Part shown: one piece after another, positions 1 to 49,937 of the stretch
How the letters are laid out: each line of letters opens with the position of its first letter
How positions within the stretch are numbered: the stretch's first letter is position 1
Source: Bugula neritina
Lineage: Eukaryota; Animalia; Bryozoa
DNA length: 64,000 bases
Direction of reading: 5' to 3'
Assembly: GCA_964035545.1 (NCBI GenBank)
Contig: OZ037772.1
Coordinates: 10,538,818-10,602,817 of the forward strand
Translations under genes and position numbers: made by a program
Notes under the pieces: generated by a model
The model's database searches: none
What the model was told of the DNA's origin: nothing
What the model saw: only the letters and a program-made list of their open reading frames with translations

Positions 1-796
1 TGAATAATGGTAATATAATATTTAGTCACAGTTTCAACATTTCAATAACATTAGCATAGTGTAATATAATCACATTATAACTTTTAGCAGTGGGAGACAA
101 TCACCGATATTCTGTTGTCAAACTCAAAGAAAACTCAGCCAGTTTCACCACAACACAGGAAGATACAAGAGTAGATAAATTTAGTAGTAACTATATGAAC
201 ATAGAGTCTATGGAGAATACACAAGGGTAAAGTAACTTTCAATAACATTGACTAAATTTTAATTAATATTCAAGTATTTAGTTACAGCATATAATAATAG
301 GTAATAGCTCAGCATAATAGTACTTGTTATTGTATATACAATATGTGAATTTTAACTTTTGTTAGATCACCAAATTTAAATTCATAAGAAACTATAAATA
401 TTCTGCATAAATTGAATTATTTCTACAGGAGGAATGCCTGTCAGTCTGGTCAACCCAACAAAGTGTATGAAAACATGAAAGAAGCTGATTTAGTAGATGG
501 AGGCAGTAATTATGTTGGTAAGTTAGATGTTAGTTGAAAGTCCACCATTTTATTCCCAGTTATTCTAAATGAGAGTGGAGAAACGTTTAGATCATTAGCA
601 ATATTATTTTTTCAATTGAAATGGTGGTTAGTTATGTGGATGCAAAATACTGTGCATATATAATACGATTTAACTATATATATGTCTCCTGGAATACAGC
701 TTTAGTCATCTTTTTATACATTCTGTAGGTATGACAACTCCTGGTACAGAGCCTGCTCACGTATACTCCTCATTGAGAGATGCACGTCTAGATTAA
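1..796 (+). CDS. Receptor cluster gene 0 (3' part only): cytoplasmic Tyr-motif tail, close paralog of gene 1
   Basis: Exons <1-9, 91-226, 429-517, 729-796 (TAA), all GT-AG and phase-consistent. They translate to ...GDNHRYSVVKL...SNYMNIE...KVYENMKE...SNYVGMTTPGTEPAHVYSSLRDARLD*. Bases 1-~1320 align to ~6918-8485. Confidence 0.85.
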
Positions 797-3004
797 CACT
801 CTATGGTCTATTTGTCAGGTCTATATATATATCTTTGACTTCCTAGATAACCTGTAATATAACTCATAATCATATTCATAACAAAATGATGAACTTTAAA
901 ACAAATTGATGTTTTTTTATAAAATTATGTTTATATACTATATTTATTTATATCATTTAAAATTCAGTTTATGTGTTTTACTGCTTTCTTTTTAAACTAA
1001 TACGTTTTTCTATACGTGCTATGTTGATAGAAAGCGCTAATAGCTATAAATAGCAAGTTAACCAATTATTTTGATAAGTATTATATATAAGCTGGTGTTA
1101 ATTGGCATGTATTTTCAATGTCTCCCATTATATTAAATAAACAGTTATATATTTATATTACGTTTGTAGCTCAGCAGTATTTTGTCTTTTAATTAACTAT
1201 GGATAATGAAAGCTTGTAAAGCTGTAGAAATTACACAAAGGGCTTATAATATATGCAGAATAGACATCAAGGAGGAAGTTGAATTTACACAATAGCATAA
1301 TATAGCTAAGGAATGTTTTATATATTTTTTGCAAAAGTAGGTTTAGAAACTACAAAGAAAAGTATGATTGTTGGCTCAAGGTGTATGATAATATACTGTA
1401 ATATAAAACTAATATTTATATAGAAACTGTTTTTGGTCATGTTTTTACCCACATCAAAATCTACATGCAAAATACTTCACGGCCTATATGCCAGTAATAA
1501 TAACACTATATATTATGCTAATAATAGTACTGTGTGCTACTAACAATAGCATTGTGCTAATAGTTGGTAACTTCATGTACAATCCATAATTGAATTTTAT
1601 TAATTGAGTTTGGTAAAAAATTAAATTATTTCTATAAAAAAAAATTATACGAAATTATTTAATGAACATTTATTTTACAATTTCATTGTCCATTAACATA
1701 TGCAATTGCAACTTATGGAAAAAGTTGAAATTTTGAATTCCTCCTTTTGATTTTTATCCACTTTATGATATACTTGAAATAAAAAATATGAAATACCCCA
1801 ACTTATTTGCAACATAATAAAAAAAGCTTCAAGATACCACAACTCCGTACAATTATTCTTTTAAATAACTTATATAAGTTAACAATTACACCCCAAGCAT
1901 GTTTTTCTGTTTGTATTGAGAACATAGATTTTGCCTGCAAAAAATCATTTGGACTAAAAAAGCATTTCCTGTCATTATGATTCTGTTTTCGTTATGGTCT
2001 TGTTTTTTCATCAAAGTTGTTCAATATGAGCAGACCTTTGTGATACATAAATAATTAGAACTTGGTAGAGAATTACAAGTATAAATAGTTTATACTAATA
2101 TTACATGTATATTGACTTTAACACAAATCTTCTTAATATTTCTTGGTTAGGGCAAATAAAACATCATTCATAGCATGTGTAAATAAAAGGTGAACATTTA
2201 GCTTCTTTGTAATTCCATAGCAGAAAAAGGTGCTATATATTGAATAATAATAATAACCCTCATGGCAAATAATAGAAATTAATTGGAACCAAGGCTATGC
2301 TTTTCACATACCAGGAAGTTAGCCTGTGCTTGTTGATTGGTGGAAATATTGTCTACAAATGATGGGCTGGCACTGCGGCTATATAATGCTTTTGTGTGGC
2401 AACATGCTATATGATGAAGCTTTCTGGATGTGTGCCTTTATTATTATATTTTAGGAATTCATTTTCAGATTTGTCTCCCTCCCTTAACCAATTTAAACCT
2501 CACTGTAGTACCTTAGGAGGCAAATGGTATAGTGGTTGTTGTGCTTCAACCATAATGTGTTATTTTACTACATATAATGGCTTCTAATTAAGTATCAATG
2601 CTTTTTCATAACAAAAGCTAATATGCTATAGGAGATGTGGTAGTTTACATTGCATTTTTTGTTATAAGCTTGTGTTAAAGTTAGCTAGCCTTCCACCATG
2701 TTTCAAACACTAAGCATACTTTGCAATGATGATTTTAATGCCAATGAATAAGGACATTTTTGCAGCGACTTTTTCAAAGCACAAATTAGATATCAAAATA
2801 CATTATCTTTGATGCATGAGTCAATCAGTTTCTTCCATTCTTACAGTGACTTTTCTTTAACAATAACACTATAAGTATTATTTCAACATCAATAAGGAAG
2901 TGTACTAAAGTAGGAGTATATATAGTATAACTACTGCACACCGTACTAGCTACTAGTTTGCTGTGAATTAAAAAGTGAGCATTGACTTCAGTAGACTCCG
3001 TACC

Positions 3005-6000
3005 ATGGATTCTAGGCTATATAATAAAGTACTCTGGCTATTCACCACTTTGTTTCTCATCAAACAGTATGGTGAGTTTATTTATATTTTATTATTCTCT
3101 AGTGGATCATTATTATAGTTTATTTATTTGTGTACCGAATTTTTAGTTTTTATTTCTTTTCAGACACAATTAAATGTAACTCGTCAATCATACACTTTAC
3201 ATGGTGTGCAGTTTGTTGCTCTGATCAGCTTATAATGGTTTGTCAACCATATTTGTGTGTCAATATATTTACTGCAGTAAATATATCTAAAGTTCTACAA
3301 ACTGTTTGACTTGATTTTATAGGTAGCCACTGCTTTCTCTAGAATTGCCCAAAACATTGTTTATTTTTTTCGAAATGCCGATTAAGTTGACCAGATGCAT
3401 CTGCAGTAAAAATTATCAGTCAATTGAAACTATATTCTCCTCAAGATAATGTGATGACCGCAAGGAATTCTAAATATAATGTGCTGGAAAAAATTGTTAA
3501 TGCAAAATATTGATGTGATTGAACAGTAAAAGGATGTCTTAGCTTTTCTTATTATATAACCAATTATTCGCACATGCAATAAATATCTGAGTTTGGCTTG
3601 AACTGGTTAGCTATAACATTATTTTATGCAGTGCAGAAAAATTGTAAAATTAAGCCATCGAAAACATTGCTTATAAAGATTGAGAGTGTAAATTCTTAAA
3701 ATATGAACTGTTGTAATGTAATGTAGTGATATATAGAATTTATAAGTTTGCAGTTTTAAAGTTATTATTCTTCTATAAGATCATTATACAATACAAACCA
3801 ACACTATATTTATTTGTCTATTTCTTTTCAGGTTGTCAGAGTGTGACTGAGTTCTGCACCAACTCAGTACAGAACATATCTTACAGAGTTGGAAGTTCTA
3901 TCAACATAACCAGTCCAGACTACCCCGGTTCTACTTACAATATATCACATGACTGTGAGATAAATATAGACACAGGAAGTACTAAGAGAGTTGGGTTTAG
4001 AATTGTTCAGACAAATCTTGGAGATGAGTCATCTAAATGTCAGATTGATTACCTCATAGTAGACTCTAGTGGTAATGATATTCCTAGAAAGTGGAACTGT
4101 AGTCTGGCTAATGATAGTGATGCGGTTCTCATTGGACACCATACATATAGTCAGACAGGATTTAACCTCAAGTTACCTGCTGGTTCAACACTAGGATTCA
4201 CCTTGACCTTTACAGGTAACGATGATATGTTAACTCAATGCCAACATTTATACTTAGTTTCTTATATATATAGTATGAGAAATCACTATTCAAAAGTTTT
4301 TTTGCTGGTTATATTATAGGCAGTATACTTGTTTAAGTTTTATCAGTATTTAAAATTTGATTATAGTTTTTATAATCCTATCAACATGCAATTAGATCTG
4401 CAGTGCAGTATATAATGGTATGTATACAAGTTATTATGAGAAGATTAAATTTAAGTTATTAAAGGTACATCTGGTTTAATAGCTCTGTCCATATACAGCA
4501 CATATATAATCTAAGGGATGAGCTATAACTGACTCATTAAGTCGTATCTGAATTTATACTTATTTTATAGTATATATATATAAACAGAAATGAAGTAACA
4601 CAACACAATGCCATATATGTTTAAAATTAATTTAACGTGCACTCAATATTGTAAAATCTGTGCAAAGAAAGTATTGATGTTTTGGTTTTTGCATTTTTCT
4701 ATTAGATTTCAGCTATGAGGGTCTTTTGAAAACATTTGCTCGCATTTACTAAAAATGGATACATGTCTTTCGGAGATTTTTTCTCTCATGCAGATGGCTA
4801 TACTGTAAACAAAGCATGACTCTGAAACATGACAAATCTTTATGCAGTTTTTTATAGCAGGCAAATCTTCTCTTTGATCATTGCAGATTAGATTTTATGC
4901 CCTAAAAATCTTTTAAATTTTGGCTATCTCTTACAGCTTTGCCACTCTACTCTATGACATCATCAACTCAAACTGTATCAGCAGCCACGTCACCAAGTGG
5001 TTACATAATGAGTCATAAAGGGTTTAATATACAGTATGCTAATCTCTATGGTTACAATCTATATAATAAACTTAACCTGACAGACCTCAGAGGAGTTACA
5101 GGAATACATTTAGAATTTATATCCATGAGCATCGGATTTTCATCAAAATGTGGATCTTCTGGTGATGAATTTAGACTAAACTCAAAGCCAACTGATAACC
5201 TCTATTCATGTCAAAACATCATAATGCCACCTTCTCCTCAGTACCTGCCCATCAACCCAGCTATCTCTTCTCTTCTATTCAATTTCACCACAGACTCTCT
5301 CAACAGATTTCCTGGCTTCTTACTGAAATATACAAGTATGTAGACAGCAATTATTATATGGTCGCAAAATATGTTATTTATGATAATGCAAGATTAAAGT
5401 TATAACCTCGATCTGGATACTTTTTGTAGCTTATACCAATGTTGAAATCTCTAGTAGGCCTACTACAACTAGTACAACATCGAGTACCACAATAAAAACC
5501 ACCAGCAGCACTACTGCCAGCACTACTACTAGCAGTAGTGTTGGCAATATAAGTGCTAGTAGTAGTGCTACTATTAGTACCAGCATAACTAGTATTACCA
5601 CTGCAGATCCAACTCATTCAACTACAACATCTGCAACAATGACCTCTAAAGAGCAAATAGCAGGTGAGTTATATAAGCAATATTTTACAGACAAACATAA
5701 CATTAAGCTATAGTGTGGCTCTAAGTATGTGGTCTTAAATATTTAATTCACAAAACTTTATCATAATATTATACTTGGCATGGCTTTTCCTATTTATATT
5801 TCCATACCAATTTAAGCTATATGTAAGTTATTACAGATGCTTGAAACAGTACGGCACATATTATAGAAATCAGAGGTAAATGAACAATCAAATCAAAATG
5901 TTTCATGTTTTTCATACAACTTTTAATGCAATTAAGAAAACAAAGCTATGATTGTAATTACTATAATTCCCAAGATGTTAAATGCATTAATAACTTATAA

Positions 6001-7701
6001 ACCATAGTAAAGGCTTTAAGTTATATGCTAAGGCACTTTAAAAATTTCAAATGGTTTGTGTTATTTTGTTAAGCAAAATCTGGAATCAGTTTTAAATAAA
6101 AATATCATATTATGCTAATTTGCCCGTAAATAAATTGCTGATCAACTATATATACATGCTAATGCTAATACGCTCTTTATGTTACAGGATGCCCTAGAAT
6201 AAATACCAATGTAATAGTTGGAATAAATGTGGCTGCAATCTGTTGTATAATCATCATCAACATAGCTGTGTGTCTACTATGGAGAAGGTAAGTGATAAGA
6301 TATATTATACTAGAATTAATATACTTAAGTGTAGTATACTTATAGTTCTGTTTTGCATATAAGTTGTTTGAAAAAAGAAATGTGTGCCTATATATCACAT
6401 TACGTATTGCTAAAGTTGTATTTTATCTACAAGATTGGAACATTACACAAACAGTAGCACTGAACCGACATTTTGCAATACAAAGCTGGATTTTTCTTTA
6501 TACTTAGAAGAATATTTAGTAAACCAAATTATGTTTTTGTATATTCTAAATGCATTTATTTAGACTTCAAAATTTCTAAACATGCTGTATTGTAAAGCCT
6601 ATATTTAGACATTGAGTTTTCAACAGTTATCCTAAGTGTGCTATAGGCACAGCTATATATAATTATATCTATTTTCCTATATTGCACATGGCCTATAATA
6701 TGCTATGTTATTCCAACGTAAAGTGGTGAAAGCTATAATTACATACTTTTTGAATTAAACATCTAAATATGATGGATAAACTTTCATGCACATGAATTAA
6801 AATATAAATTCAACATTTCCATTACAGAAGGTTCATGACTAAACATGGGACTGATGATCATACCTTGGATACAAACGCCAGTACATCTGATAAACATTAT
6901 GAACAGCTGAACCAAGTGAATAATGGTAATATAATAATTATTTATAGCTTAAGCATTTCAATAACATAAGCATAGTGTAATATAATTACATTATAACTTT
7001 CGGCAGAGGGAGACAATCACCGATATTCTGTTGTCAAACTCAAAGGAAGTTCAGCCAGTTTCACCACAACACAAGAAGATGTAGGAGTAGATAACTCTAG
7101 TAGTAACTATATGAACACGGAGTCTATGAAAAATAAACAAGGGTAAAGTGACTTTTAATAGCATTGACTAAATTTTAATTAGTATAATAGTATTTGGTTA
7201 TAGCATATAATAATAGGTAATAGCGCACACTAAACCTTTGTCAGCATAATAGTACTTGTTATTGTATATTATATAATATGTGAATTTTAACTTTTGTTAG
7301 ATCACCAAATTTAAATTCATAAGAAACTATAAATATTCTGCATAAATTGAATTATTTCTACAGGAAGAATGCCTGTCAGTCTGGTCAACCCAACAAAGTG
7401 TATGAAAACATGGTAGAAGCCAATACAGTAAATGGAGGCAGTAATTATGTTGGTAAGTTAGATGTTAGTTGAAGGTTTACCATTTTATTCCCAGTTATTC
7501 TAAATGAGAGTGAAGAAATGTTTAGATCATTAGCAATATTATTTTTTCAATTGAGATGGTGGTTAGTTATGTGGATGCAAAATACTGTGCATATATACAA
7601 TATAACTATATCATGTTTTTATACGTTCTGTAGGTATGACAACTCCTGGTACAGAGCCTGCTCACGTATACTCCTCATTGAGAGATGCACGTCTAGATTA
7701 A
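3005..7701 (+). CDS. Receptor cluster gene 1: type I membrane protein (~524 aa) with signal peptide, 2 divergent CUB domains, S/T stalk, TM and multi-Tyr tail
   Basis: Exons 3005-3071 (MDSRLYNKVLWLFTTLFLIKQY), 3832-4215 (CUB-like: ITSPDYP..Y....DC...DYL...GFTLTFT), 4937-5335 (CUB-like: SGYIMSH...FTTDS...FPGFLLKY), 5430-5663 (S/T-rich), 6188-6287 (TM VIVGINVAAICCIIIINIAVCLLW), 6828-6925, 7007-7142, 7364-7452, 7634-7701. Total 1575 nt, open frame. Confidence 0.88.
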
Positions 7702-7723
7702 CACTCTATGGACTATTTTTCAG

Positions 7724-7876
<153 letters not shown>

Positions 7877-7913
7877 TGAGTTATATATGAGTATTATATT
7901 ATATTGAGTATTA

Positions 7914-7949
7914 TATGAGTTATATTACAGGTTACCTAGGAAGTCAAAG

Positions 7950-7982
<33 letters not shown>

Positions 7983-8707: not shown

Positions 8708-8901
8708 TCTCGAATTGAGCATTTTAAAAGGATGACTATATTGCATACCAACACTTTATAACTAGTGAATGCTTTGTAAGTTAACAATATGTTCAAAAAC
8801 TCATTAGCTAGTTGGTTGGTTACATACAAAAAAAATTCTTCATTATGAATGGGTGACTAGTTTTCAATTTTAATCTATAGAAACAGCACAAGGAACTTAT
8901 A

Positions 8902-12850: not shown

Positions 12851-15341
12851 ATGGCCATGTCTTCCAACTTTATTCTCTGGATATTTCTTCTACTCATGAT
12901 TAAAGGTGAGTACTATATATTTCAACAATTAAAAGCTTATTTAATGCTTCATTACGGGTAATAAATAGTTGTACTGATTTGTGAGAAAATTTAATTAAAC
13001 AATTAATATTATGATGGATATTGTTTTGAAAAAAGGTGACAACTTGCTTGTTAGCTCAATTATTATATTTCAACTACATTTGAATGTTTAGTAATAGGAG
13101 TTGCATCAGGAAAGGCAATGTATTTATGCAGGTGAACACTGTCTTGAAAAAAGTTTATCTAAGTGCATTTCATAAAACTTTACCCTGGCTTTTATTTATT
13201 TTTGTTACTTAATGCAGCTGCAATAAAGAATTTTTAAATTAAAGTCAAATACAAAGTTTATTTCAAACACTTCGTTCAGAAATAGCAATTTGAAAATATG
13301 GCACTATATATAATTAAACATAACAAACATATCCCTGTTTGTTTTATGAATCAGCTGTTATAAGCTACGATAACTATTTATTATTATAGGCTGTCAAAGT
13401 TCTGTAAAAATTTTTAGCCAATAATTAATAGAAGCATGCTATGAAATAAACTGCAACAAAGAGAAACCAAGAATATTATTATAGTTGTTGTCAAATAATT
13501 TAGGGTTCATTCATTTTTAAATTACAATCAAATTATTCCCTCATATAGTTAAGATATTATACATAGAAAACATTTAAGAGTTGAAAATAGATATGGGTGC
13601 ATTTATGATTGTAAAATAATTTTGCCCCCCCAACTGGGATTCGAACCTAACATCTCCGGCTTAAGCAAGCAAGTGTGCTAATCATTACGCCACGGGACCT
13701 GCTGGGTTAACTCAACACAACAATGATGGCTATTACCGACACTTCATATTGCTTAGAAAATAAATATATATCTTCAGGTTTCTTTTGGATATAACATTAA
13801 TCAAAACAATATATTTGTTCATACAGTTTTGAAGAAGAGTCTTATTCGTAAACATATAACAGTCATTATACTTTCATTACAATCTGAATTTAATTTTAAT
13901 GATAAGAAAACCTAATTTAGCAACATTTATAAAGAATATTAATAACTACCAAAGGGTATATTGTTTACTGTTCAGTGTACGAGTATACATTTGCATTCTA
14001 TTGTGTAATTTGAAAGTAAACATATAATATACTATTCAGAATAGATGTTTCAAGTTATTGTATGTTGAAATTATTTTTGTAGATGCTGGTAGTGTTGTAG
14101 CGCCTACTACTGCTGCCCCTACTACTGCTGCTACTACTACTGCTGCCCCCACTACTGCTGCCCCCACTACTGCTGCCCCCACTACTACTTCAGCTCCACC
14201 TACTACTACTACTGCCCCTGCTACTACTACTACTGCTGCCCCTACTACTACTACAGCTCCACCTACTACTACTACGGCTGTCCCCACTACTACTACTACT
14301 GCCCCCGCTACTACTACTACTGCCCCTGCTACTACTACTACTGCCCCCGCTACTACTACTACTGCCCCTACTACTACTACTACTGCCCCCGCTACTACTA
14401 CTACAGCTGCCCCTGCTACTACTACTACTGCCCCCGCTACTACTACTACTGCCCCCGCTACTACTACTACTGCCTCTGCTACTACTACTACTGCCCCCGC
14501 TACTACTACTACTGCCCCTGCTACTACTACTACTGCCCCTGCTACTACTACTACTGCCCCCGCTACTACTACTACTGCCCCTGCTACTACTACTACTGCC
14601 CCCGCTACTACTACTACTGCCCCCGCTACTACTACTACTGCCCCTGCTACTACTACTACTGCCCCTGCTACTATACTACTACTGCCCCCGCTACTACTAC
14701 AGCTGCCTCCACTACCACGACAGCTGTATTTATTACTACTACAGCTGCCCCTGCTACTACTACTACTGCTGTCCCCACTACTACTGCCGCTGCCCCCACT
14801 ACTGCTGCCCTTACTACTCTTACTAAAACTGCCATCACAACCACAACAAAGTGTTGTAAAGAACCAATCACATGTCAGTGTAAATATGATAAACCAATTG
14901 ATTATCACTTGTTAGATAATATGTTTACAACAATAATAAATTCAATCGTCTACTTAATATTTTTCTTAATATATATTTTCATACTGTTTGTACACTGAAA
15001 TATACATAAAACATGTAAATATAATAATTTAAGCAGAGCATTTGCTTGCAGTAGTGATAAAGCAGAGAAAAGCTCATATCTGTGTATCAATTATTATTCA
15101 ATACGTAATTAATAACCTAGTTTACTGTTCCAATGTTTATTCATTTTTATGTGTGCTGTTTTGCAATTGTTTTTGTAAAGATAATTTTTCTGATGCAGGA
15201 TTCATGTTTCAGGTGGATATCCGACTGACAACAAAGTGATAATCGGAATTAGCGTATCTATCCTCTGTGTCATAATAATCACAAACATAGTAGTCTGTCT
15301 GTTATGTAGAAGGTGAGGTCATTGTTGTTGAAGGCAACATT

Positions 15342-15734
<393 letters not shown>

Positions 15735-15737
<3 letters not shown>

Positions 15738-15910: not shown

Positions 15911-15914
15911 TTAT

Positions 15915-15946
<32 letters not shown>

Positions 15947-15978
15947 GAAATAAAATGAGATTTGATTAATATACTGGC

Positions 15979-16031
15979 ATTTATTACTAGTAGTTTCGTA
16001 CACAAGAACGATGTGCACTCATCAGATAAAT
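15979..16031 (-). ncRNA. Minimal type I hammerhead ribozyme (identical copy in the full-ORF element)
   Basis: Exact reverse complement of 19333-19385. Confidence 0.88.
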
Positions 16032-16121
16032 TAGCCACTATGGTTGCTTACAACTATAAATAATGTGTAAATATACAGATTAAAGCTAGAAGATCAAAAA
16101 GGTAGCATTGTAATTAGTTGG

Positions 16122-18242
16122 CTATGTTACAGCATTCTTGAGTAGAAATTTACTACTATGTCTGCATATGGATAAAAAGTCATAGCGCTTATTGAGGGAA
16201 GACAACTGTGGCTTATAAAGAATGAAAAATTTTTCCCATGAGCATAGCTGACAGATTTTAGTGTTGTTGTTGTGTGGTTGGGCTTTTCTGAGAATTTTCC
16301 AAGATATGGTAAAATCCAGACCTTTGTCTTTTAAGGTCCAGATGTGTTTACTCAACTCAGTTTGCATGCGCTTGGTTGGGTGTCTGAAAGAAGCAAGGTG
16401 GTTGTAGTATCTTGCCTTGAATGCAGTGGAGGAAATTCCTATATATGTTTCAGCAGTATCTTTTGATGGGACGAATACTTTGGCCTGGTACACAATGTTT
16501 GGGGTGGTGCATTCTCCTGGGAGCGGGCATGTCTTTACATTTCTACAGTTACAGCCTGCCTGTGATATAGGGGTGGTGTTGCATTTAGTAACACTTCTGT
16601 TGTGAGCAGTGATGGTCTGCTCTAAATTTGGGCAGCAACTGTAGCTGAGTTTGAGTGTGTTTTTATTAAATATTTTGTGCAGTGGGTGTTTGGTGTTGAA
16701 TATATCTTTTATCAGCTTGAGGTATATGGAGCCGATTTTCGTCTTTACATTGCGGCTATAAGGTGGATTGTACCAGATGACTTGTCTTTGTCTGATGGGT
16801 TTGATGCTTGCATTGGTGTTGTCAGTATAGTCTTTGTATTTGAGTTGGTAGTCATATCCGCTTTTAGCCAAAGCATCTTGATATAGAGGGGTGGCATTGT
16901 TGAAGATAGTTTCATTGGTAGATATGTCACAAAGTCTGCGGTTTATAGATTCTGGTATGTTATTCAGTATGCTGGGAGGATGGTTAGAGTCTTTGTGTAC
17001 ATACAGAGGGATGTTGTTGGGCTTGGAGTACGGTGTATGATGTTTCTTGACCAGATCTAGGGTGACGTCTAAATAGTCAGTTGTCTTGATATTAACATCT
17101 ATGGTGATCTTTAGACCGTGTGACTGGAATAATATGCAAAGATCTTTTTTCAGTCTTTCAGCTAGTTGTGGTTTAAGATCTGTTACACCTAGCCCATCGT
17201 CTCTATATAGTCCAATGTTAGCTTTGAACTTTTTTGAGATTTTACTTAACAAAAATAATCCTACTAATTCACATGTTTCAGCACCATCATGTGAGCCCAT
17301 GGTGACGTCAAACAAATTGTCTGATTGTCTTTTACCCCAAAATGAGTTGTCATGCACCAATATGGATTTTTTTGTGTGCAATATGATATTCCGTTCGTGG
17401 TTGCTGACTGTAGTGTGCAAGTTGGCAAAGTCGAGAGCATCAGATAGTAGTTTTGGCGATATAGATGGATAAAATTCCACAATATCGAACACGATAAAAG
17501 AGTGCCTGTTTGTGGTGGTCAAATTGTCAAACCAATGTAAAACTGCAGATGTGCTTTTCCACTGGTTTAGGCCAAGTTTGCTGTTTATCGATGTATTAAT
17601 TCTGTCAAGTAGTTGTTTACTCACCCTACCTATCTCTGGTTTGGTGGGGTTAATAAGGCGGCAGGTGGGGTTAGTTATGTAGTTAGCCTTATGATCCTTG
17701 ATAGTAATGAAGGCGGGTTTCTTAGCTGTTATAGTAATTCTGTCATCAAGTTCCAATTGTTCAGCCATGGCTTTGTCTTCACTAGTGATGTTGGAGACTT
17801 TGTCATTTGATATTTTCTTATAGGTTTTAGTGATATTGTTAGTTAAGAGTCTGTCATACGATTCTTTGTCCATTTTGTAGAAATTGTTGCTTTTATCTGC
17901 AGGCACTATTATATTGTCGCTCATGGTTATTTTATGCTTGATGTCGGAGGATAGCTTGTCTTGAAAGGTATTGTGGACATGTCTAAACTTAACAGATCGG
18001 ATCATGTCAGCTAATCCTTGCTCGAAACTTTGCATAGCTGTGATCTGTGGTGGGGACTTTTTAGACCTGAATCCATAGGTTTCCTTCATGCTAGATCTAG
18101 AGTCAGGATTTAGGAAGAAGAAGGCAGCCCATCTCATTCTGATGACTAAAGATTCTGTGTATTGGATCAGTCTCCGTATATACAGTGATTGTGATGGAAT
18201 CGGTATATTCATAGTTGAATAATCAAATCTTAGTTGTTCCAT
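16122..18242 (-). CDS. Penelope-like element ORF: reverse transcriptase plus C-terminal GIY-YIG endonuclease (Naiad-type), 706 aa, uninterrupted
   Basis: PADKS (DKG-like motif), RT motifs DIVEFYPSI, MGSHDGAETCELVG and YRDDGL; linker CNCRNVKTCPLPGEC; endonuclease IVYQA...YIG...FKARYYNH...CQLCSWEK...LNKR. Confidence 0.93.
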   Translation of the reverse strand: MEQLRFDYSTMNIPIPSQSLYIRRLIQYTESLVIRMRWAAFFFLNPDSRSSMKETYGFRSKKSPPQITAMQSFEQGLADMIRSVKFRHVHNTFQDKLSSDIKHKITMSDNIIVPADKSNNFYKMDKESYDRLLTNNITKTYKKISNDKVSNITSEDKAMAEQLELDDRITITAKKPAFITIKDHKANYITNPTCRLINPTKPEIGRVSKQLLDRINTSINSKLGLNQWKSTSAVLHWFDNLTTTNRHSFIVFDIVEFYPSISPKLLSDALDFANLHTTVSNHERNIILHTKKSILVHDNSFWGKRQSDNLFDVTMGSHDGAETCELVGLFLLSKISKKFKANIGLYRDDGLGVTDLKPQLAERLKKDLCILFQSHGLKITIDVNIKTTDYLDVTLDLVKKHHTPYSKPNNIPLYVHKDSNHPPSILNNIPESINRRLCDISTNETIFNNATPLYQDALAKSGYDYQLKYKDYTDNTNASIKPIRQRQVIWYNPPYSRNVKTKIGSIYLKLIKDIFNTKHPLHKIFNKNTLKLSYSCCPNLEQTITAHNRSVTKCNTTPISQAGCNCRNVKTCPLPGECTTPNIVYQAKVFVPSKDTAETYIGISSTAFKARYYNHLASFRHPTKRMQTELSKHIWTLKDKGLDFTISWKILRKAQPHNNNTKICQLCSWEKFFILYKPQLSSLNKRYDFLSICRHSSKFLLKNAVT

Positions 18243-19332
18243 TTTGCAGTTTATAAATAGAGTGCTCTACTTAAAGGAGCGTAAAAGACGTCACCCTAGA
18301 TCTGGTCAAGAAACATCATACACCGTACTCCAAGCCCAACAACATCCCTCTGTATGTACACAAAGACTCTAACCATCCTCCCAGCATACTGAATAACATA
18401 CCAGAATCTATAAACCGCAGACTTTGTGACATATCTACCAATGAAACTATCTTCAACAATGCCACCCCTCTATATCAAGATGCTTTGGCTAAAAGCGGAT
18501 ATGACTACCAACTCAAATACAAAGACTATACTGACAACACCAATGCAAGCATCAAACCCATCAGACAAAGACAAGTCATCTGGTACAATCCACCTTATAG
18601 CCGCAATGTAAAGACGAAAATCGGCTCCATATACCTCAAGCTGATAAAAGATATATTCAACACCAAACACCCACTGCACAAAATATTTAATAAAAACACA
18701 CTCAAACTCAGCTACAGTTGCTGCCCAAATTTAGAGCAGACCATCACTGCTCACAACAGAAGTGTTACTAAATGCAACACCACCCCTATATCACAGGCAG
18801 GCTGTAACTGTAGAAATGTAAAGACATGCCCGCTCCCAGGAGAATGCACCACCCCAAACATTGTGTACCAGGCCAAAGTATTCGTCCCATCAAAAGATAC
18901 TGCTGAAACATATATAGGAATTTCCTCCACTGCATTCAAGGCAAGATACTACAACCACCTTGCTTCTTTCAGACACCCAACCAAGCGCATGCAAACTGAG
19001 TTGAGTAAACACATCTGGACCTTAAAAGACAAAGGTCTGGATTTTACCATATCTTGGAAAATTCTCAGAAAAGCCCAACCACACAACCACACAACAACAA
19101 CACTAAAATCTGTCAGCTATGCTCATGGGAAAAATTTTTCATTCTTTATAAGCCACAGTTGTCTTCCCTCAATAAGCGCTATGACTTTTTATCCATATGC
19201 AGACATAGTAGTAAATTTCTACTCAAGAATGCTGTAACATAGCCAACTAATTACAATGCTACCTTTTTGATCTTCTAGCTTTAATCTGTATATTTACACA
19301 TTATTTATAGTTGTAAGCAACCATAGTGGCTA

Positions 19333-19385
19333 ATTTATCTGATGAGTGCACATCGTTCTTGTGTACGAAACTACTAGTAATAAAT
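19333..19385 (+). ncRNA. Minimal type I hammerhead ribozyme in the Penelope-like 3' region
   Basis: atttat-CTGATGA-gtgcaca(tcgttct)tgtgtac-GAAA-ctactag-TA-ataaat: conserved core, stem I atttat/ataaat, 7-bp stem II, short stem III, GUA cleavage triplet. Confidence 0.88.
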
Positions 19386-19484
19386 GCCAGTATATTAATC
19401 AAATCTCATTTTATTTCTTCTAATGTTTACGCTCTAGATTTATTTCTATAGAGCACTCTAGTAACGTTTTATAAACACTCATTT

Positions 19485-19847
<363 letters not shown>

Positions 19848-20168
19848 TATATATAATTATTATAATTATTATATATATAAATAATTATTAATAGTTATCA
19901 TAAATATATATATATATATACTAAATATTACAATTGACCAGTGCAATACTTCATATATATGTATTTGTAGAAAATACATGACTGAATTAACTAATATTAA
20001 AAGGCAAGCAGATAGTCCTCACTCAATTTCTACAGGTAGAGAAGATAAACAGCTGGGGCAGATAATTGGTAATCTTTTATTTCTAGACAAATATTCTCTT
20101 TGTATATAACTCTTTATTGTGATGTATACTTATACACAAACATTACCACTAAGTATAATCATTTTCTT

Positions 20169-20203
<35 letters not shown>

Positions 20204-22834: not shown

Positions 22835-22977
22835 GTGAGACATCCCCCAATACAGAACAAGCTCATCTATATGTTTCCTTACATTCAAAAGTTATTCTCA
22901 AAATAAAATCGATTGACTCTTTAGCATGCCACAGGCAAGAAATGTATTTTAATAACACAATGACAACTACTACATAA
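22835..22977 (+). CDS. Duplicated/alternative terminal exon of gene 2 (ETSPNTEQAHLYVSL...)
   Basis: Acceptor ttacag. Aligns codon for codon with the normal last exon (MTALNTELDHTYSSL) in the same phase 1; open for 46 codons. Confidence 0.6.
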
Positions 22978-31244: not shown

Positions 31245-31387
31245 GTGAGACATCCCCCAATACAGAACAAGCTCATCTATATGTTTCCTTACATTCAAAA
31301 GTTATTCTCAAAATAAAATCGATTGACTCTTTAGCATGCCACAGGCAAGAAATGTATTTTAATAACACAATGACAACTACTACATAA
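31245..31387 (+). CDS. Duplicated/alternative terminal exon of gene 3
   Basis: Same sequence as 22835-22977. Confidence 0.6.
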
Positions 31388-33599: not shown

Positions 33600-39971
<6,372 letters not shown>

Positions 39972-40391: not shown

Positions 40392-40471
40392 ATGAGACAA
40401 CCCCCAATACAGAACAAGCTCATCTATATATTTCCTTACATTCAAAAGTTTCTCAAAGTAAAATCGATTGA
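40392..40471 (+). CDS. Duplicated/alternative terminal exon of gene 4 (ETTPNTEQAHLYISLHSKVSQSKID*)
   Basis: Acceptor ttacag, phase 1, Tyr motif kept with a conservative V>I change. Confidence 0.6.
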
Positions 40472-42566: not shown

Positions 42567-43052
42567 TATTTAAAATGCAGAATAGATTATATTATTACAA
42601 TTTCTATCTGCAGTAAACTAGCACCACAATAATATCTGCACTGAATTGAGCATTTCAAAAGGATGACTATATTGCATACCAACACTTTATAATAAGTGAA
42701 TGCTTTGTAAGTTAACAATATGTTCAAAAACTCATTAACTAGTTGGTTGGTTTCATACAAAAAAATTCTTATTATGAATGGGTGACTAGCTTTCAATTTT
42801 AATCTATAGAAACAGCACAAGGAACTTATATATACAAAGCAAACAGCAAGTGTAACACAGAGTGTATACTATATGGCATCGTGTATGTACTAGTAGTTGA
42901 ATATAGTCATCAGTCAGTTTAGTAGTAGCTGGTTTAGCTCTTCATCAAAAGCAAAGGTTTTATTAGATCACATGATTTGATGTTTATACTTTCAAGTAAA
43001 CCAACATAAACAGCAAACACCATTTTGTGAGTTTAAATATTATACTATAGCC

Positions 43053-46000
43053 ATGTCTTCCAACTTTATACTTTGGATATTTCTTACACTAATGATTGGA
43101 GGTAAGTACTGTACATTATATTTTAACAGAAAGCTAATTAAATGGTTTATTACAGGCAATATATAGTTGTATTGATTTGTAAGAGAATGCATTTAAGCAA
43201 TAAATACATGATTATGAAGAATATTTTTTTGAAATGATCATCACATGACGATCATTTGATGTTTAGATATATATAAAGATTTCTTTACTGTTTCATAAAC
43301 AATAACAGTTGAATGTTTAGTATAATTTGATTTACATCACAAAAGCTATTGTGCTGATCCAGTTATAAATTATATTCAAAATTAGTTTATCTATGCTTAT
43401 CTTATATAACTTTCTCTACCCCTCTTTTACTTTAAGATGCTATACTGCAGAGCATTTAGAATAATGCAATTGAAATACTGCCATTTTAAACACTTTGACC
43501 AGAAATTGCCGCATTCGGAAATAAATACAAAAAAGACCCAAAAAAGCATGTCTTTGTTGTGTTTATGCATCAAAAATTGTAAAAGAATATCTAACTATTC
43601 AATTTTGAAAAACATAGGTCAGTAAAACTCTGATGCCGACTATCACTAGTATAATTTGGTCTCATAATGAAATGCTATTGGATCATTACCCATAGGCTAA
43701 ATCATGTATCTAAATATATGTAGACATGCATGTGCTTGCCCAAGTGTGTGTTTTGCAAACGCATTCTAAACGCATTCTAAACACTACTTTGCTTAGACAT
43801 TACAATTTAAGTATGTCACATTTTAGTACCTTAAAAAGCTTTTTTATTAGAAAAAACTATTGTGCTAATGATTTTATAAATAATTAAAAACTATATATGT
43901 CCAAATAACTTTGGTGAACAATTAAAATGATATACATAATATATAGCTTCATGCTCTGATTGCATAAAATAGATCAAAACAATTCTAATTTATGTTGCAT
44001 GATTTTTTGTTCGCAATTTGAAATAATGAAAAAATTTTCAACTGGCTGTCATTCTACCCTCATGCATATAAGTTTTGTTAAAACAACTAAACTTAGCAAC
44101 ACTTTAGTATAGTTTATTCTTCAGCATATATAAGTATAATATATGTTTGCATTTTATTCTGTGATCGAAAAAAAACATCCTCTTTTATAGAATACAATGT
44201 GTTTCAAGTTGTGATATGCTGAAGTTGTTTTTGTAGCAGCCATGAGTATTGTTGATCTTCCCCCAACTACTACTACTGCTGCTACTACCACTACTACTGC
44301 CACTACTACTACTACTCCCACTACTACTACTACTCCCACTACTACTACTACTCCCACTACTACTACTACTGCCACTACTACTACTACTCCCACTACTACT
44401 ACTACTCCCACTACTACTACTACTCCCACTACTACTATTACTCCTACTACTACTACTACTACTCTTACCACTACTACTACTCCTACCACTACTACTACTC
44501 CTACTACTACTACCACTCCTACTACTACTACTCCTACTACTACTACCACTCCTACTACTACTACCACTCCCACTACTACTACTACTCTCACTACTACTAC
44601 TACTCTCACTACTACTACTATTACTACTCCTACGACTACTACTACTCCCACTACTACTACTACTCCCACTACTACTACTACTCCCACTACTACTACTACT
44701 CTCACTACTACTACTACTCCCACTACTACTACTACTCCCACTACTACTACTACTCCCACTACTACTACTACTCCCACTACTACTACTACTCCCACTACTA
44801 CTACTACTCCCACTACTACTACTACTCCCACTACTACTACTACTCTCACTACTACTACTACTCCCACTACTACTACTACTCCCACTACTACTACTACTCC
44901 CACTACTACTACTACTCCCACTACTACTACTACTCCCACTACTACTACTACTCCCACTACTACTACTACTCCCACTACTACTACTACTCCCACTACTACT
45001 ACTACTCCCACTACTACTACTACTCTCACTACTCCCACTACTACTACTCCCACTACTACTACTACTCCCACTACTACTACTACTCCCACTACTACTACTA
45101 CTCCCACTACTACTACTACTCTCACTACTACTACTACTACTCCCACTACTACTACTACTCCCACTACTACTACTACTCCCACTACTACTACTACTCCCAC
45201 TACTACTACTACTCTCACTACTACTACTACTCCCACTACTACTACTACTCCCACTACTACTACTACTCCCACTACTACTACTATTCCCACTTCTACTACT
45301 ACTACTACTACTTCTACTACCACTACCACAACTGAAACAACGAATTTTAAAGAATCAGCTACAGGTTAGTTGAAATGTTATAAAACAGTTAAATAAAACT
45401 TGTTAAATACTATTGACAATAATGTATTTATTAATTTCAACTTAACATTATTTCCATCCATATACTCTCATACTATATTTATGCGGCACAATATGCACAT
45501 AGAATGTAAATGATATAATAAGCAGAGAATTAGCTTGCAGCATTTGTTTATGTCAGTGAGTGTTCCAATGTTTTGTAATTGTTATTGTAATTGTTTGTGG
45601 ATAAACAGATATTGTGATAAGAAAGTTTGGGTTAGTTTCGTGTGATAGGTAATCTTTAATCTGTCTCAAACCATAAGCCAGAGAATGTACTTGTAACCAT
45701 AGAATGAAGATGGGAAGCCAAACATATCAGCGTGTTGGGTTATAACAGTTATAGGTTGAATCGCTACAGAGTATCAGTATTAAGTATTTAGTTGATAGCC
45801 TGAGGTCTAAGTCAATTGTCAGACGCCATCATCAACAGCATTGCTAAAACAGAAAAAAGCTCACATTTGTGTATCAATCACTAAATAATTAATTTGTAAT
45901 CAGAAACAACACATACCTAGTACAGTGTTCTAATGATTATTAATTTCCATGTGTATTATTGCTCAATTCATTTTGCAAAGAGAGTTGTGCCTCATGTTTC

Positions 46001-49000
46001 AGGTAGGCTTGACGACAACACAATCATCGGAATTAGCGCATCTATCCTCGGCGTCATAATAATTACAAACATTGTAGTTTGTCTTTTGTGGAAGAGGTGA
46101 GTTCAAGTTCGTTATTGTTAAAGATAACATTCGCTAGCTTACTTAAAAAGTTATTAAAAAACTGAGGTTTAGATTTAACAATTTAAAAATAATTCTTTAT
46201 ATCTATGCTTCTATTAGTATATAGTTATAATGTAAATTTGCTATGTTAAATATATTGTATTTGTTAGCATTAAAGATAACGATAGTTTATAGATGTTGAA
46301 GCTGTATATCAGTATATGTTTGCATAATTCAGTATGTTTGAGGCAAAAGAATTATTAATTATTCAAGATAATATTACTTAATCAACTGTACAGCTCCATG
46401 GCATATTTAGTGTCACAAGATCAAAAATATCATACTAAGTTGATGTAAGCTAGGTTAAGTAAATTAGGTCATAGTATTATATCCATATTGACTAGAATCA
46501 TAATATACTCACTCACGCAAGTTTATAGTCGCTATCCCTGTGAGAAACCCCTGCTGGAGAGGGTTTTTATTAGAACGGGCTAAGGACTTATTGTTCAAAT
46601 GAGGCACAGGAGCAATTATGACTGGATGTTCTTCTTAACATCATCAATGGCCTTTGTCGGGGTTCGAACCCATGACTTCGTGTTCACAAAGCAAACACTT
46701 TAACCCCTAGAACATGGCTGCTCCCTAGAATCATACTAATGAACAATAAACAAAACATAAATTGAAAAAATACATGAGTACAAAAATTGAAAACTAATAC
46801 AATATTTGAGTATTGGAAGAAGTATTGGAAGAGATAAATTCAATGATCAAAAGTGTATTCATTGTTTATTAGTATGATTCCTGTTAATATGGATAAAATA
46901 TTATGGCCTAATTTAAATACAATTATCAATAAGTATTTTGCACACAAATTCAATCTATACTTTTCAAATAATGAAGTATTAAAATTATTTTTTTATTAAG
47001 AACATAAATGTGCAAAAAGCTCAGTTATTAAAATTATTATACTATATAACTGTTACAATTAAACATTATAATGCTTCATATATATTTTATAGTGAAGATG
47101 TAAATTAATCATTTTTTTCACAGAAGACGAGTGACGGAAACTAGAAATGAGGGGCAAACGGATAATACCAATTTACATTCTGTCTGCAAAGAAGATGAAG
47201 AATCAGGTCAGATAAGTGGTAGTATTTTATTTAGCCAAGTATTTTGTTTATATATATAACTTTTTATTGTCAGATATACCTATACATAAACATATCACTG
47301 CATCCCACCCATACCGATCTCTGAACTCCACTGGCCTCTCTAATACTCCTTCAGTCTTCAGGCTCCCCTGGCCACTCAACTTCCTCTGAGTACTACTACA
47401 CTTCACTAAAGACCAAAATAGCCTAAAAAATAACTACCCCCACTAGGATTCGAACCCGAGACCTCTAGCTTGCAAGCAAGGGTGCTACCCATTACACCAC
47501 AGGGACCACTGGGTAAAATCAACACTACAAATTATTTGATTTGTAACGCTATATAATATAATGCCTTTTTATTGGTTAGATGATGAGCTGCACCAATACG
47601 CAGCCATTGATCTCAAAGGAGTTGTGGAGTTCCCTGCACATTCAACTGGTGCTGATAGTGCAGGAGTAGAGGAAGCTAGAATTAGCAAGAGTTATTACAA
47701 CAAAGAGTATGTAAATAACATTCAGGGGTAAAGCTAAAAATATACTGTATATTTCAATTGTTATCAGCTAAGAAATTCTAGCTATATATATAAAGTGGAT
47801 CGTATAAAGTAAAACTCACGCAAGTTTATAGTCACTATCCCTGTGAGAAACCCCTGATAGAAAGGGTTTTTGTTGAAGCGGGCTAAGTACTTATTTTGAA
47901 ATGAGGCACAGGAGTAATTATGACTGGATGCTCTTCCTAACATCACCAATGGCCTCGAACCAATAACCTCGCGATTACTAGGCAAACACTCAAACCCCTA
48001 GACCACAGCTGTTCCCAGTACTGCATATTAATTAGTTCATTGTAGACAATTATTTACTGATAAACAAATTTAATTGTCATGAGAATCAGCTCTCAACTTA
48101 GTTTAAAAATTTCTCCACATAATTTATATACGCATTATATAGTTTCAATATTTGCTCAGACTGTTTACCTACTTAACATGGCTTTAGTTGGAGGCTATTT
48201 TGAAAATATATATCAATAAATGATTGAAAATATATATGGTTTCTTTCATATATAGGTCTATTTTATTTCATAGAACGCAGGTTTTGTTACTGCATCTCCC
48301 TCAAATTTCTAAAAAGTTGATGTTTTTAAACTAATTATAGCAAAAAGCATTCCAATTGCTCATGTTATGTGGTGGCCAGCGAGGCGTACTAATCGCACAC
48401 GTGCACAATAACCAATAGTGTTGAAGCACGTGATTACTCCCTGCGGAGCAGAATGCTTCAGGGGGGGGGGGGGACGTTAATATAGCTAGTTAGTTAGGAG
48501 TAGTACACGAATAGAGATATAGTAGGTTAAGTAGACTTGTAAATATATTGTGGATGCTGGATGTATTTTGATGTTACTTGTATATATATAATTAAATGTA
48601 GTCTTTTATCACGCATTTTCTGTGAAGTTCTTGGAGCTATCATCTAAACAGAATATACAGTTGCACGCATAGAACCCACCCTAAATATTATAATTGACAA
48701 AATTATAACGCATACACAATCTATTTAGTTGGCAGCAAATAATTAATGCATAGAATAAAATCATGTGAATAATTTCCTATTACATTTATGAACTGTAAAG
48801 TAAACACTACATACTTTAGTTTATTTTGCTCAAAATCAAATGAAAAATTAATTCTGAAAACATGTTATTAAGCAAAAGCAAAATATTATCACCCAAATTG
48901 CTATATTTGTAAGGAAAGATTAATTTGGCAAGCACCTATCATTAATAATACCTGGTAATGTTGTTATCTAATTAGGGCCAGGTTATTTTATGATTTGCAG

Positions 49001-49436
49001 CATATCATATTGCAGTGTGTTTGTTATAGGAGTGAAAGAGGTCAAACTGGGCAGGAGAATTCAGTATATGAGAATATAGATGAGGTGAAAATGGCTGGTC
49101 CTAATGAATACATTAGTAAGTTGAAGTCTATACTGTTTGTTATATTAACAGCAAAATGTTATTATATTTTATTGTCATATAACAACACTAACTTATTGTC
49201 AAGCTATGAGTCATGCTACCTATATATTTTTGTTGATTTTAATTTTGTACAAACGATAAATTTTTTCAAAAAACTTTTGAATTGAAGTTCATCTAAATTT
49301 TCATCACTTGAGTCAATGTGGCATAAGGTTTCTCCTGTCACCCCCAGGTATGACAACTCTGGATACAGATGTAGATCATACATATGCCTCTTTAAACAAT
49401 TCCTCAGCTGATCTACAAGCACAACACAAAATGTAA
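43053..49436 (+). CDS. Receptor cluster gene 5: transmembrane mucin-like protein (~562 aa), 6-aa PTTTTT repeats, multi-Tyr tail; most divergent mucin-type copy
   Basis: Exons 43053-43101 (MSSNFILWIFLTLMIG), 44237-45364, 46003-46096 ([25 protein letters not shown]), 47124-47218, 47580-47727, 49030-49115, 49348-49436. Total 1689 nt, open frame. Confidence 0.88.
45545..45837. mobile_element. Probable solo LTR in gene 5 intron 2 (5-bp TSD)
   Basis: gcatt|TGTTTATG...CATCAACA|gcatt, with a 7/8 terminal inverted repeat. The insertion is absent from the aligned introns of genes 2-4. Confidence 0.72.
46503..46724 (-). mobile_element. tRNA-derived SINE (family B) with an 11-bp target site duplication
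   Basis: Minus strand A-box-like tgttctagggg and B box gggttcgaaccc. TSD ctagaatcata at 46492-46502 and 46725-46735. Confidence 0.8.
47300..47529 (-). repeat. tRNA-like dispersed repeat (family A), best-preserved copy
   Basis: Minus strand: tgtagtgttgattttacccagt-ggtccctgTGGTGTAATGGgtagcacccttgcttgcaagctagaggtctcgGGTTCGAATCCtagtggggg. Other copies at ~13625-13722, 20849-20944, 26291-26380, 29258-29347, 34379-34475, 38396-38480 and 51766-51821 (all minus) and ~9616-9800 (plus). Confidence 0.75.
47811..48016 (-). mobile_element. tRNA-derived SINE (family B)
   Basis: Aligns with 46503-46724 over ~200 bp. Confidence 0.75.
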
Positions 49437-49899
49437 GCTTTTCATGTTATAATTAAGGCAACTTAAAGAGGCTTCCTTTTTAAAAATTAGTTATATATAG
49501 TTTATCATTATAGAAACTTTTTGGTAGACTTTTGTTACAACTGTTTTGCACTTGTCAACATAAAAGACATAATAAGTTTTAATGTTGAAGATGACTATAT
49601 AAAACGTTTATGACAACTTTTTTGACAGCTGGTAACGTTATTTATTTAACATATTTTTACCAAAATACAGAATAACCTGGATTTTCATTATTATATGTTT
49701 TTTCAAGTATAAAATAAAAGCATTTATTTTGCTGTTGTTTAAGAAATGAAACTAGTTCTAATTAATATATTTTGCAAAAACAAAAATTATTTCACAGCTT
49801 TTAGAAACGTTATTTGGTTGTTAATTATTGTTTTTGAGCCTCAGATAAAATTTTCCATGTTTAGTTACTTTATTATAATCAGGGACTTATATATTTCAG

Positions 49900-49937
49900 G
49901 TGAGACAACTCCTATTAAAGACTGAGCTCATCAATAG
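49900..49937 (+). pseudogene. Degenerate copy of the duplicated terminal exon in gene 5
   Basis: Acceptor tttcag is retained, but the phase-1 frame reads ETTPIKD*AHQ*, with the Tyr codon position now TAG. Confidence 0.55.

Follow-up and report, generated by a model that had tools for sequence, protein, structure and literature searches.

We describe a tandem cluster of six genes (A–F) on the plus strand of a 64,000-nucleotide stretch of chromosome 8 of the bryozoan Bugula neritina (assembly tzBugNeri2.1); this whole stretch is referred to as the window. Judged from the sequence, the six genes form a tandem family of type I membrane proteins with common signal, transmembrane (TM) and tail exons and with swappable ectodomain modules, and their likeness is homology by duplication and not chance. 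We suggest, with a rough probability of 0.55, that the window holds a Bugula-restricted cluster of type I membrane glycoproteins which act as non-catalytic tyrosine-docking receptors with CUB or mucin ectodomains. Four observations underlie this reading, namely the gene structure, the homology of the copies, the conservation pattern of the tails and the shuffling of modules.

The gene models were built by hand, using as seeds a hydrophobicity scan and tblastn searches with the tail peptides of the last copy, which gave five TM exons and, for each tail exon, five to six copies, all on the plus strand. In A–F, the exons follow the order signal, one or more ectodomain exons, TM and four tail exons (T1 to T4), with AG at 100% of the acceptors and GT at 100% of the donors. 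The intron phases are the same throughout (phase 1 follows the signal exon, every ectodomain exon, T1 and T3, and phase 2 follows TM and T2), and the exon sizes vary little (TM 94-100 nucleotides (nt), T1 95-98, T2 136-148, T3 86-89 and T4 68-89). The rebuilt models agree exactly with an earlier note on this DNA, which had claimed six same-strand paralogs with a shared exon plan, identical phases and these sizes. Five of the six genes have intact reading frames of 524-676 amino acids (aa) over 7-9 exons each with canonical splice sites (A 527, B 524, D 563, E 676 and F 562 residues). Gene A begins 3787 nt before the window, which holds just the end of its T1 and T2-T4, the remainder lying upstream. 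The window DNA is about 30% G+C and rich in microsatellites.

As the earlier note had also stated, the ectodomains differ radically. The products of A and B consist of a signal peptide, CUB1, a CUB2-like domain (CUB2), a Ser/Thr stalk, TM and tail, whereas C–F have one mucin exon each with differing repeats, so that the products of D, E and F consist of a signal peptide, the mucin exon, TM and tail. The 3′ end of the stalk or mucin exon is homologous across the genes, with K-E-x-x-x-G directly before the donor, which implies that the mucin-only genes are CUB-type genes minus the two CUB exons and with the stalk expanded. The identification of the ectodomains as CUB and mucin held for CUB1 and for the mucin repeats, while CUB2 is CUB-like on weak matches only. 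CUB1 alone passes the Pfam CUB threshold (gene B: PF00431, 24.8 bits with the cut-off at 21.4, E=3e-5, over positions 8-64 of the 110-position profile); its structure model was unusable, with a predicted local distance difference test (pLDDT) value of 32. CUB2 has no Pfam match, and its single PDB sequence match is cubilin (E=0.033, over the C-terminal strand motif). The AlphaFold model of CUB2 (pLDDT 52) gave Foldseek TM-scores of 0.47-0.54 to the CUB domains of Kremen and C1r, none of them at E<=0.001, and VIA-align gave Z values of 5.7-7.2 to about 20 CUB domains in the top 50, tied with other beta-sandwiches.

The mucin exons contain arrays 0.6-1.3 kb long, built from repeat units of 15-21 nt; the unit measures 21 nt in C and E, 18 nt in F and 15/30/105 nt in D. 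In C–F, the repeats are separated from TM by only about 25 non-repeat residues. Ser, Thr and Pro together account for 66-92% of the ectodomains of D, E and F, and there are three N-glycosylation sequons in A and eight in B. The ectodomains are 349-491 residues long and every ectodomain exon is phase 1-1. These features bring up an alternative which we consider unlikely, namely that the products are structural epithelial mucins or adhesion glycoproteins, with roles in the glycocalyx, lubrication, anti-adhesion or substrate contact, and that their tyrosines are YxxPhi sorting or endocytosis signals for AP-2-type adaptors and not SH2 docking sites. Four of the six genes do carry a mucin domain alone outside the membrane, and the repeat unit and length shift fast, as in structural mucins; however, the same tail is joined elsewhere to a pair of CUB domains, a typical ligand-binding module.

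The tails bear on both explanations. After the predicted TM helix come a basic stop-transfer (RR/KR) and a cytoplasmic tail of 132-142 residues with 6-7 tyrosines, where the sole strongly conserved features are five tyrosine motifs: Tyr1 (RYSVV, QYEAV or QYAAI; YxxV/I), Tyr2 (NYMN, NYVN or SYYN; YxN), Tyr3 (VYENM, AYENV or VYENI; YEN), Tyr4 (NYVG-M or EYIS-M; YxxM, with the hyphen at the T3-T4 junction that the motif spans) and Tyr5 (HVYSSL, HTYSSL or HTYASL; YxxL). Among the 124 ungapped cytoplasmic columns of A–F, 23 are invariant; these include five of the six tyrosine columns of gene A, compared to 18 of the 118 others (Fisher p = 8e-4), which bears out the proposal that tyrosines are kept while their neighbours diverge. 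The invariant residues other than Tyr cluster next to tyrosines. Since each conserved Tyr has a constant codon offset from the exon border in both tail subfamilies (type 1 in A and B, type 2 in C–F), this pattern is not made by alignment or gap placement.

Three of the five conserved motifs (YSVV/YEAV/YAAI, YVGM/YISM and YSSL/YASL) fit YxxPhi, as expected for sorting signals. However, two sites are YxN with an invariant Asn (NYxN and YEN), and Asn at +2 is needed by Grb2-type SH2 domains and not by AP-2; moreover, a single sorting signal would suffice, but five tyrosines are kept. We therefore favour docking over sorting alone as the role of the conserved tyrosines. No conserved canonical immunoreceptor tyrosine-based inhibitory or activation motif (ITIM or ITAM) is common to the window tails: the ITIM consensus at Tyr3 fits type 2 tails only (SAYENV, SVYENI; type 1 has KVYENM), and YEQL-x11-YSVV is confined to type 1 tails. 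Searched exon by exon, no tail or TM exon has a Pfam match, even at E = 10, in line with the earlier remark that this was not recognised as a named family.

The earlier note had proposed a comparison of nonsynonymous and synonymous substitution (dN, dS) between tail and ectodomain. For the cytoplasmic exons of E versus F, dN is 0.295 and dS 0.567, a ratio of 0.52 (dN < dS, p = 0.004; with the TM exon added, p = 3e-4), and the tail is under purifying selection between these two genes. Between the two tail subfamilies, silent sites have reached saturation, dN/dS is about 0.2, and the five tyrosines are still common to both. For the CUB ectodomain, A versus B gives a dN/dS of 1.03, which fits relaxed constraint and diversifying selection equally.

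Exon-by-exon searches of the whole genome found nine family genes, with five copies each of CUB1 and CUB2 (A, B and three further genes, d1-d3). The latter form a downstream cluster on chromosome 8 (10.973-10.994 Mb, minus strand), 0.37-0.39 Mb beyond the window end. Type 1 tails number three (A, B and d2) and type 2 tails four (C–F), in a family that is small. A third TM-and-tail type, with the TM sequence IIAVAAGG.GLIL...CLLC and the tail end (I/V)(L/V)YAVVNKP...DLYASRESL, is found in d1 and d3, joined to the same CUB pair outside. The last exon of this type 3 tail, which lies outside the window, keeps (I/V)(L/V)YAVVNKP and DLYASR in the four copies aligned (d1 of this genome and, from a sibling lineage, two at locus L013 and one at locus L011), and its (I/V)(L/V)YAVV fits the ITIM consensus. 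Gene d2 is a chimera in which a type 1 tail, running through T3, continues into the end of a type 3 last exon.

Relatives were reached through exon-sized open reading frames (ORFs) and the contigs encoding them. A CUB2 profile searched against 1.84 billion representative proteins gave 41 matches, nearly all of them exon-sized ORFs. In a sibling Bugula lineage, at least 16 distinct CUB2 exons (clusters at 90% identity) are present, compared to five in this genome, and one of its loci (L017, JGI metagenome 3300003318) contains the signal exon, CUB1, CUB2, TM and T1-T3 with the same tyrosines. In the CUB2 tree, a d1-like clade (support 0.999) mixes the type 1-tailed L017 with type 3-tailed genes, and A/B-like CUB2 exons in loci L014 and L015 precede type 3 TM exons. 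Hence, ectodomain and tail modules have been exchanged, and the tree together with the chimeric d2 backs the recombining cluster postulated earlier. The tail-bearing family was found in Bugula lineages only, as proposed for a lineage-specific family: a spliced protein of Watersipora subatra has three CUB2-like domains, a stalk, TM and an unrelated tail, and at its locus (L018) only the CUB2-like domains are common to both, no tail homology being found. Scans of JGI metagenomes with T2 and CUB1 alignments gave nothing confirmed. The draft annotation of the species contains single exons only of such genes (P0169, for example, is a 135-aa 'hypothetical protein'), which makes the family easy to miss.

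A self-comparison of the window identified C/D/E as segmental duplicates with 89-94% identity including introns, and A and B are 87-90% identical including introns, from just before CUB1 to 0.5 kb beyond T4. Gene F is older: against C/D/E, the signal-exon region, the mucin exon, TM, T2, T3 and T4 align with short flanks, T1 is alike at the protein level only, and otherwise short intronic repeat elements align. As C/D/E and A/B are young segmental duplicates, the six genes count as about three independent lineages. Across the family, the signal exons share homology, that of gene B being divergent and resembling the downstream-cluster type. The 2.5 kb before CUB1 of gene B, signal exon included, are not homologous to the region upstream of gene A, and the 5′ part of gene B (window 1345-4219) is instead 81-88% identical to the region upstream of a gene of the downstream-cluster type in the draft assembly of the species (L013; GCA_010799875.2, VXIV02002409.1), which implies that gene B is a mosaic. 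Genes C, D and E have a second T4-like last exon (T4′) 0.4-0.5 kb past T4, of which gene F has a degenerate version; it is a possibility that T4′, if joined to T3, would turn YISM into YISE or YINE.

The earlier note had read the genes as a candidate immune or self-recognition cluster, which in a colonial animal would mean receptors for immunity or allorecognition; a stronger version makes the system a paired one, with the YxN/YxxM tail activating or scaffolding and the ITIM-like tail inhibitory. We regard this as quite unlikely, and an immune or self-recognition role for the family would be speculation. Such a system would be in keeping with tandem clusters on one chromosome, the A/B ectodomain ratio near 1, the larger number of CUB2 exons in the sibling lineage, the reshuffling of ectodomains and tails and the fit of the four aligned type 3 tails to the ITIM consensus; in addition, the papers searched name no bryozoan receptor for allorecognition, immunity or colony recognition. 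Against it, the genome has nine genes only, the ratio fits relaxed constraint equally, the 16 CUB2 exons may include alleles of pooled colonies, the ITIM match is a degenerate six-residue pattern, and the ITIM- or ITAM-like patterns of the window tails (SxYENV/I in type 2 only, YEQL-x11-YSVV in type 1 only) are not shared.

As in the case of LILR, KIR, Siglec, CD300 and Alr, the Bugula genes combine tandem clusters, fast-changing ectodomains, module exchange and tyrosine-motif tails, and, like paired receptors, they include in the neighbouring cluster an ITIM-like tail on the same ectodomain. Hydractinia Alr is a family of unusual immunoglobulin (Ig) superfamily genes in an invertebrate histocompatibility complex (PMC9546547). 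Unlike all of these, the Bugula genes lack Ig domains, and their TM segments showed no charged residue that would serve for pairing with an adaptor; a vertebrate-type Ig immunoreceptor was rejected on the lack of Ig domains. Less likely again is a CUB-based paired system for non-self recognition or allorecognition, in which fast-evolving CUB-CUB ectodomains would sit on multi-YxN/YxxM docking tails or on ITIM-like tails, with the mucin-only members on the docking tail. If true, it would have evolved convergently with the paired Ig receptors of vertebrates and with Hydractinia Alr, within a phylum from which no receptor of this sort is known.

For the tyrosine-docking receptors that we favour, closer parallels are found elsewhere. 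MUC1 has YxxM-type and YxN-type tail sites, and the Bugula genes resemble MUC1-type mucins in their Pro/Thr-rich repeat ectodomain of variable length, single TM and short tyrosine-motif tail. They differ in that C–F leave no room for a SEA domain and that the Bugula tail also occurs on CUB-bearing paralogs; for the tail exons, no sequence similarity to MUC1-type proteins was detected in Pfam. LAT-type adaptors have serial YxN docking sites, and a likeness to LAT/NTAL lies in the serial YxN (YVNT, YENV) and in a juxtamembrane CxxC in C/D/E, which would be consistent with a Grb2-centred scaffold. However, transmembrane adaptor proteins of this group are nearly without an ectodomain, compared to 349-491 residues here, CxxC is absent from A, B and F (CLLW), and no homology to LAT/NTAL was detected.

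Vertebrate CDCP1 (CUB domain-containing protein 1, Trask/CD318) has a CUB-like ectodomain and a tail phosphorylated by Src-family kinases (PMC4395315, PMC3534080). It differs in being a single gene, whereas the Bugula family has YxN, YEN and YxxM motifs, a mucin stalk and mucin-only members. No CDCP1 entry stood among the Pfam and PDB sequence matches of CUB1 and CUB2, which were to generic CUB proteins only, and orthology to CDCP1 was rejected, as no homology was detected and the motifs differ. DCBLD1/2 (ESDN) is a CUB-containing type I 'scaffolding receptor' with a multi-tyrosine tail that is phosphorylated by Fyn/Abl and binds an SH2 adaptor (PMC6029619). The DCBLD proteins additionally have LCCL and discoidin domains and YxxP motifs that bind CRK/CRKL. 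The Pfam search gave no LCCL or discoidin match, and none of the 6-7 tyrosines per tail has Pro at +3; lacking homology and these features, the family was not accepted as orthologous to DCBLD either. The kind of protein looks like one already known, with CDCP1, DCBLD1/2 and MUC1 as precedents, and the Bugula family itself looks undescribed.

From these features we infer expression, phosphorylation, binding partners and a biological role as follows. The ectodomain would consist of CUB, a CUB-like domain and an O-glycosylated stalk, or of the stalk alone enlarged to a mucin. Its engagement or clustering would lead a Src-type kinase to phosphorylate the tail, which would then recruit SH2 proteins, presumably of the Grb2/Drk type at both YxN sites, of the PI3K p85 type at YxxM and of other types at YxxV/L; the genome yielded at least 30 exon matches to SH2 domains. 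New members may arise through unequal crossing-over in introns and, since the ectodomain exons are all phase 1-1, outer modules and tails could be reshuffled with the frame intact.

Several points weigh against this reading. Gene C is frameshifted, its 791-nt mucin exon not being a multiple of three, and is likely a pseudogene or encodes a truncated product; d2 lacks T4; and the tails of the young paralog pairs have dN/dS values of 0.65-0.9, indistinguishable from neutral. The assignment of CUB2 as CUB-like comes from weak matches of a low-confidence model (pLDDT 52). The motifs are short and degenerate, and YxxPhi motifs are also endocytic signals. As far as the sequences found go, the tail is restricted to Bugula lineages, so that no deep conservation is demonstrable. 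No spliced full-length product was found among the 1.84 billion representative proteins, which is weak evidence, as entries of near-identical origin may be lacking there. The sole public sequencing run found behaves as DNA, its contigs covering the introns of gene B; one joint in this run (4219>4931), by the CUB1-CUB2 intron, is offset from the splice sites by 4 and 6 nt, contains unknown letters at the join, and is most likely a contig from a paralog.

Some of these points would be explained if the array were largely non-functional, consisting of young decaying duplicates, or if the hand-built models joined exons that are never spliced together. The high identity of C/D/E and of A/B in introns as well as exons, the near-neutral ratios in the young pairs, the frameshift of gene C and the 3.5-kb retroelement within its TM-T1 intron, the truncation of d2 and the degenerate T4′ of gene F all agree with decay. 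Nevertheless, we find it highly improbable, because five frames of 524-676 codons are open across 7-9 exons, and because gene F is old (dS about 0.6 versus C/D/E), yet has kept all exons, phases and splice sites with dN < dS. Furthermore, the tail subfamilies are saturated at silent sites and still have the five tyrosines in common, and the sibling lineage keeps the same exons.

The window cluster and its neighbour provide a small, concrete and testable candidate set for bryozoan immunity or colony recognition, with conserved docking tyrosines, swappable outer modules and signs of a copy-number difference between cryptic B. neritina lineages. They also illustrate cleanly how a lineage can use symmetric phase 1-1 exons to put different receptors on a single signalling tail. 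If the tail is phosphorylated and bound by Grb2- and PI3K-type SH2 domains, receptors with CUB domains and a docking tail would have arisen independently of vertebrate CDCP1 and DCBLD. The exons of the six genes are listed in Table 1.

Table 1. Exons of genes A–F and the retroelement in gene C, in window coordinates (negative positions lie upstream of the window).
Feature	Position	Strand	Remarks
Gene A signal exon	-3787..-3721	+	intact 527-aa frame
Gene A CUB1 exon	-3384..-3001	+	
Gene A CUB2 exon	-2292..-1894	+	
Gene A stalk exon	-1797..-1558	+	
Gene A TM exon	-724..-625	+	
Gene A T1	-88..9	+	
Gene A T1, final 9 nt	1..9	+	
Gene A T2	88..226	+	Tyr1 RYSVV, Tyr2 NYMN
Gene A T3	429..517	+	Tyr3 VYENM, Tyr4 NYVG-M
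Gene A T4 and stop codon	729..796	+	Tyr5 HVYSSL
Gene B signal-peptide exon	3005..3071	+	ACCATGG start context, hydrophobic core, phase-1 donor
Gene B CUB1 exon	3832..4215	+	Pfam CUB 24.8 bits, cut-off 21.4
Gene B CUB2-like exon	4937..5335	+	no Pfam match; cubilin E=0.033; weak fold matches
Gene B Ser/Thr-rich stalk exon	5430..5663	+	3′ end homologous to C–F mucin exons
Gene B TM exon	6188..6287	+	
Gene B T1	6828..6925	+	KHYEQL, subfamily-specific
Gene B T2	7007..7142	+	
Gene B T3	7364..7452	+	
Gene B T4 and stop codon	7634..7701	+	
Gene C signal exon	12851..12905	+	
Gene C mucin exon, 791 nt	14083..14873	+	frame lost about 225 nt before 3′ end
Gene C TM exon	15213..15312	+	
Gene C T1	19971..20068	+	
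Gene C T2	20994..21141	+	
Gene C T3	21701..21786	+	
Gene C T4 and stop codon	22330..22418	+	
Gene C T4′	22835..22977	+	AG acceptor, phase as T4, AHLYVSL kept
Gene D signal exon	25529..25583	+	
Gene D mucin exon	26745..27860	+	APPTV/APPTT repeats
Gene D TM exon	28200..28299	+	
Gene D T1	28399..28496	+	
Gene D T2	29397..29544	+	
Gene D T3	30104..30189	+	
Gene D T4 and stop codon	30740..30828	+	
Gene D T4′	31245..31387	+	
Gene E signal exon	33600..33654	+	
Gene E mucin exon	34837..36291	+	TTTAPAT repeats
Gene E TM exon	36631..36730	+	
Gene E T1	37558..37655	+	
Gene E T2	38530..38677	+	
Gene E T3	39248..39333	+	
Gene E T4 and stop codon	39883..39971	+	
Gene E T4′	40392..40471	+	joining to T3 would give YINE instead of YISM
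Gene F signal exon	43053..43101	+	
Gene F mucin exon	44237..45364	+	TTTTTP repeats
Gene F TM exon	46003..46096	+	
Gene F T1	47124..47218	+	
Gene F T2	47580..47727	+	
Gene F T3	49030..49115	+	
Gene F T4 and stop codon	49348..49436	+	
Gene F degenerate T4′	49900..49925	+	stop codon precedes tyrosine
Retroelement in gene C TM-T1 intron	15940..19424	-	inverted arms 15940-17070 / 19424-18286, 99.3% identical; not a family member

The introns and flanks of the cluster contain several repeated elements. The retroelement in gene C has an ORF of 706 aa (16122-18242, minus strand) that contains a YRDDG-like motif and ends in a GIY-YIG-like C-terminus, and its C-terminal part is present in a second, partial copy on the plus strand (18485-19237); the element looks like the Penelope type, and Pfam gave no significant match. 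A tRNA-like sequence at 47435-47506 (minus strand) scores 32.7 bits with the Rfam tRNA model (cut-off 29), and ARAGORN finds none there. Copies of it lie at 13609-13723, 20835-20945, 26291-26381, 34381-34477 and 38401-38481, in introns of C–F and often just before T2, and this repeat is probably a tRNA-derived short interspersed nuclear element. An element of 190 bp (8712-8901, 25098-25274, 33168-33363 and 42643-42830), the copies of which are 92-96% identical and thus above the surrounding duplicated DNA, directly precedes the 5′ region in D, E and F, while before C a 3.7-kb insertion intervenes; possible explanations are a promoter module, a mobile element or a conversion tract. Long (TA)n/(AC)n (19488-19844 and 37113-37433) and (AT)n microsatellites (15376-15735 and 36800-36933) occupy equal intron positions in C and E, which implies that they were inherited with the duplication.

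Beyond the cluster, the window contains a single-ORF C2H2 zinc-finger gene of 997 aa (56279-59272, minus strand) and, adjoining it, an open frame of 292 aa (54359-55237, plus strand) with a faint PWWP-like match (E=0.34). A JGI contig (L008) is collinear with the zinc-finger gene at 89% nucleotide identity, with flanks at 82-86%, which shows that metagenomes 3300003318 and 3300002729 contain host DNA from a diverged lineage of Bugula. In addition to the mitochondrial contig (C321), the assembly has extra COX1 copies at C6:11174072-11175412, C17:12213-13505, C214:13159-17283 and C73:40884-42662. The copy on the chromosome-scale C6 is a near-identical nuclear copy, those on the small contigs C214 and C73 contain TGA, and that on C17 is without TGA codons, this contig possibly being of bacterial or other cobiont origin.

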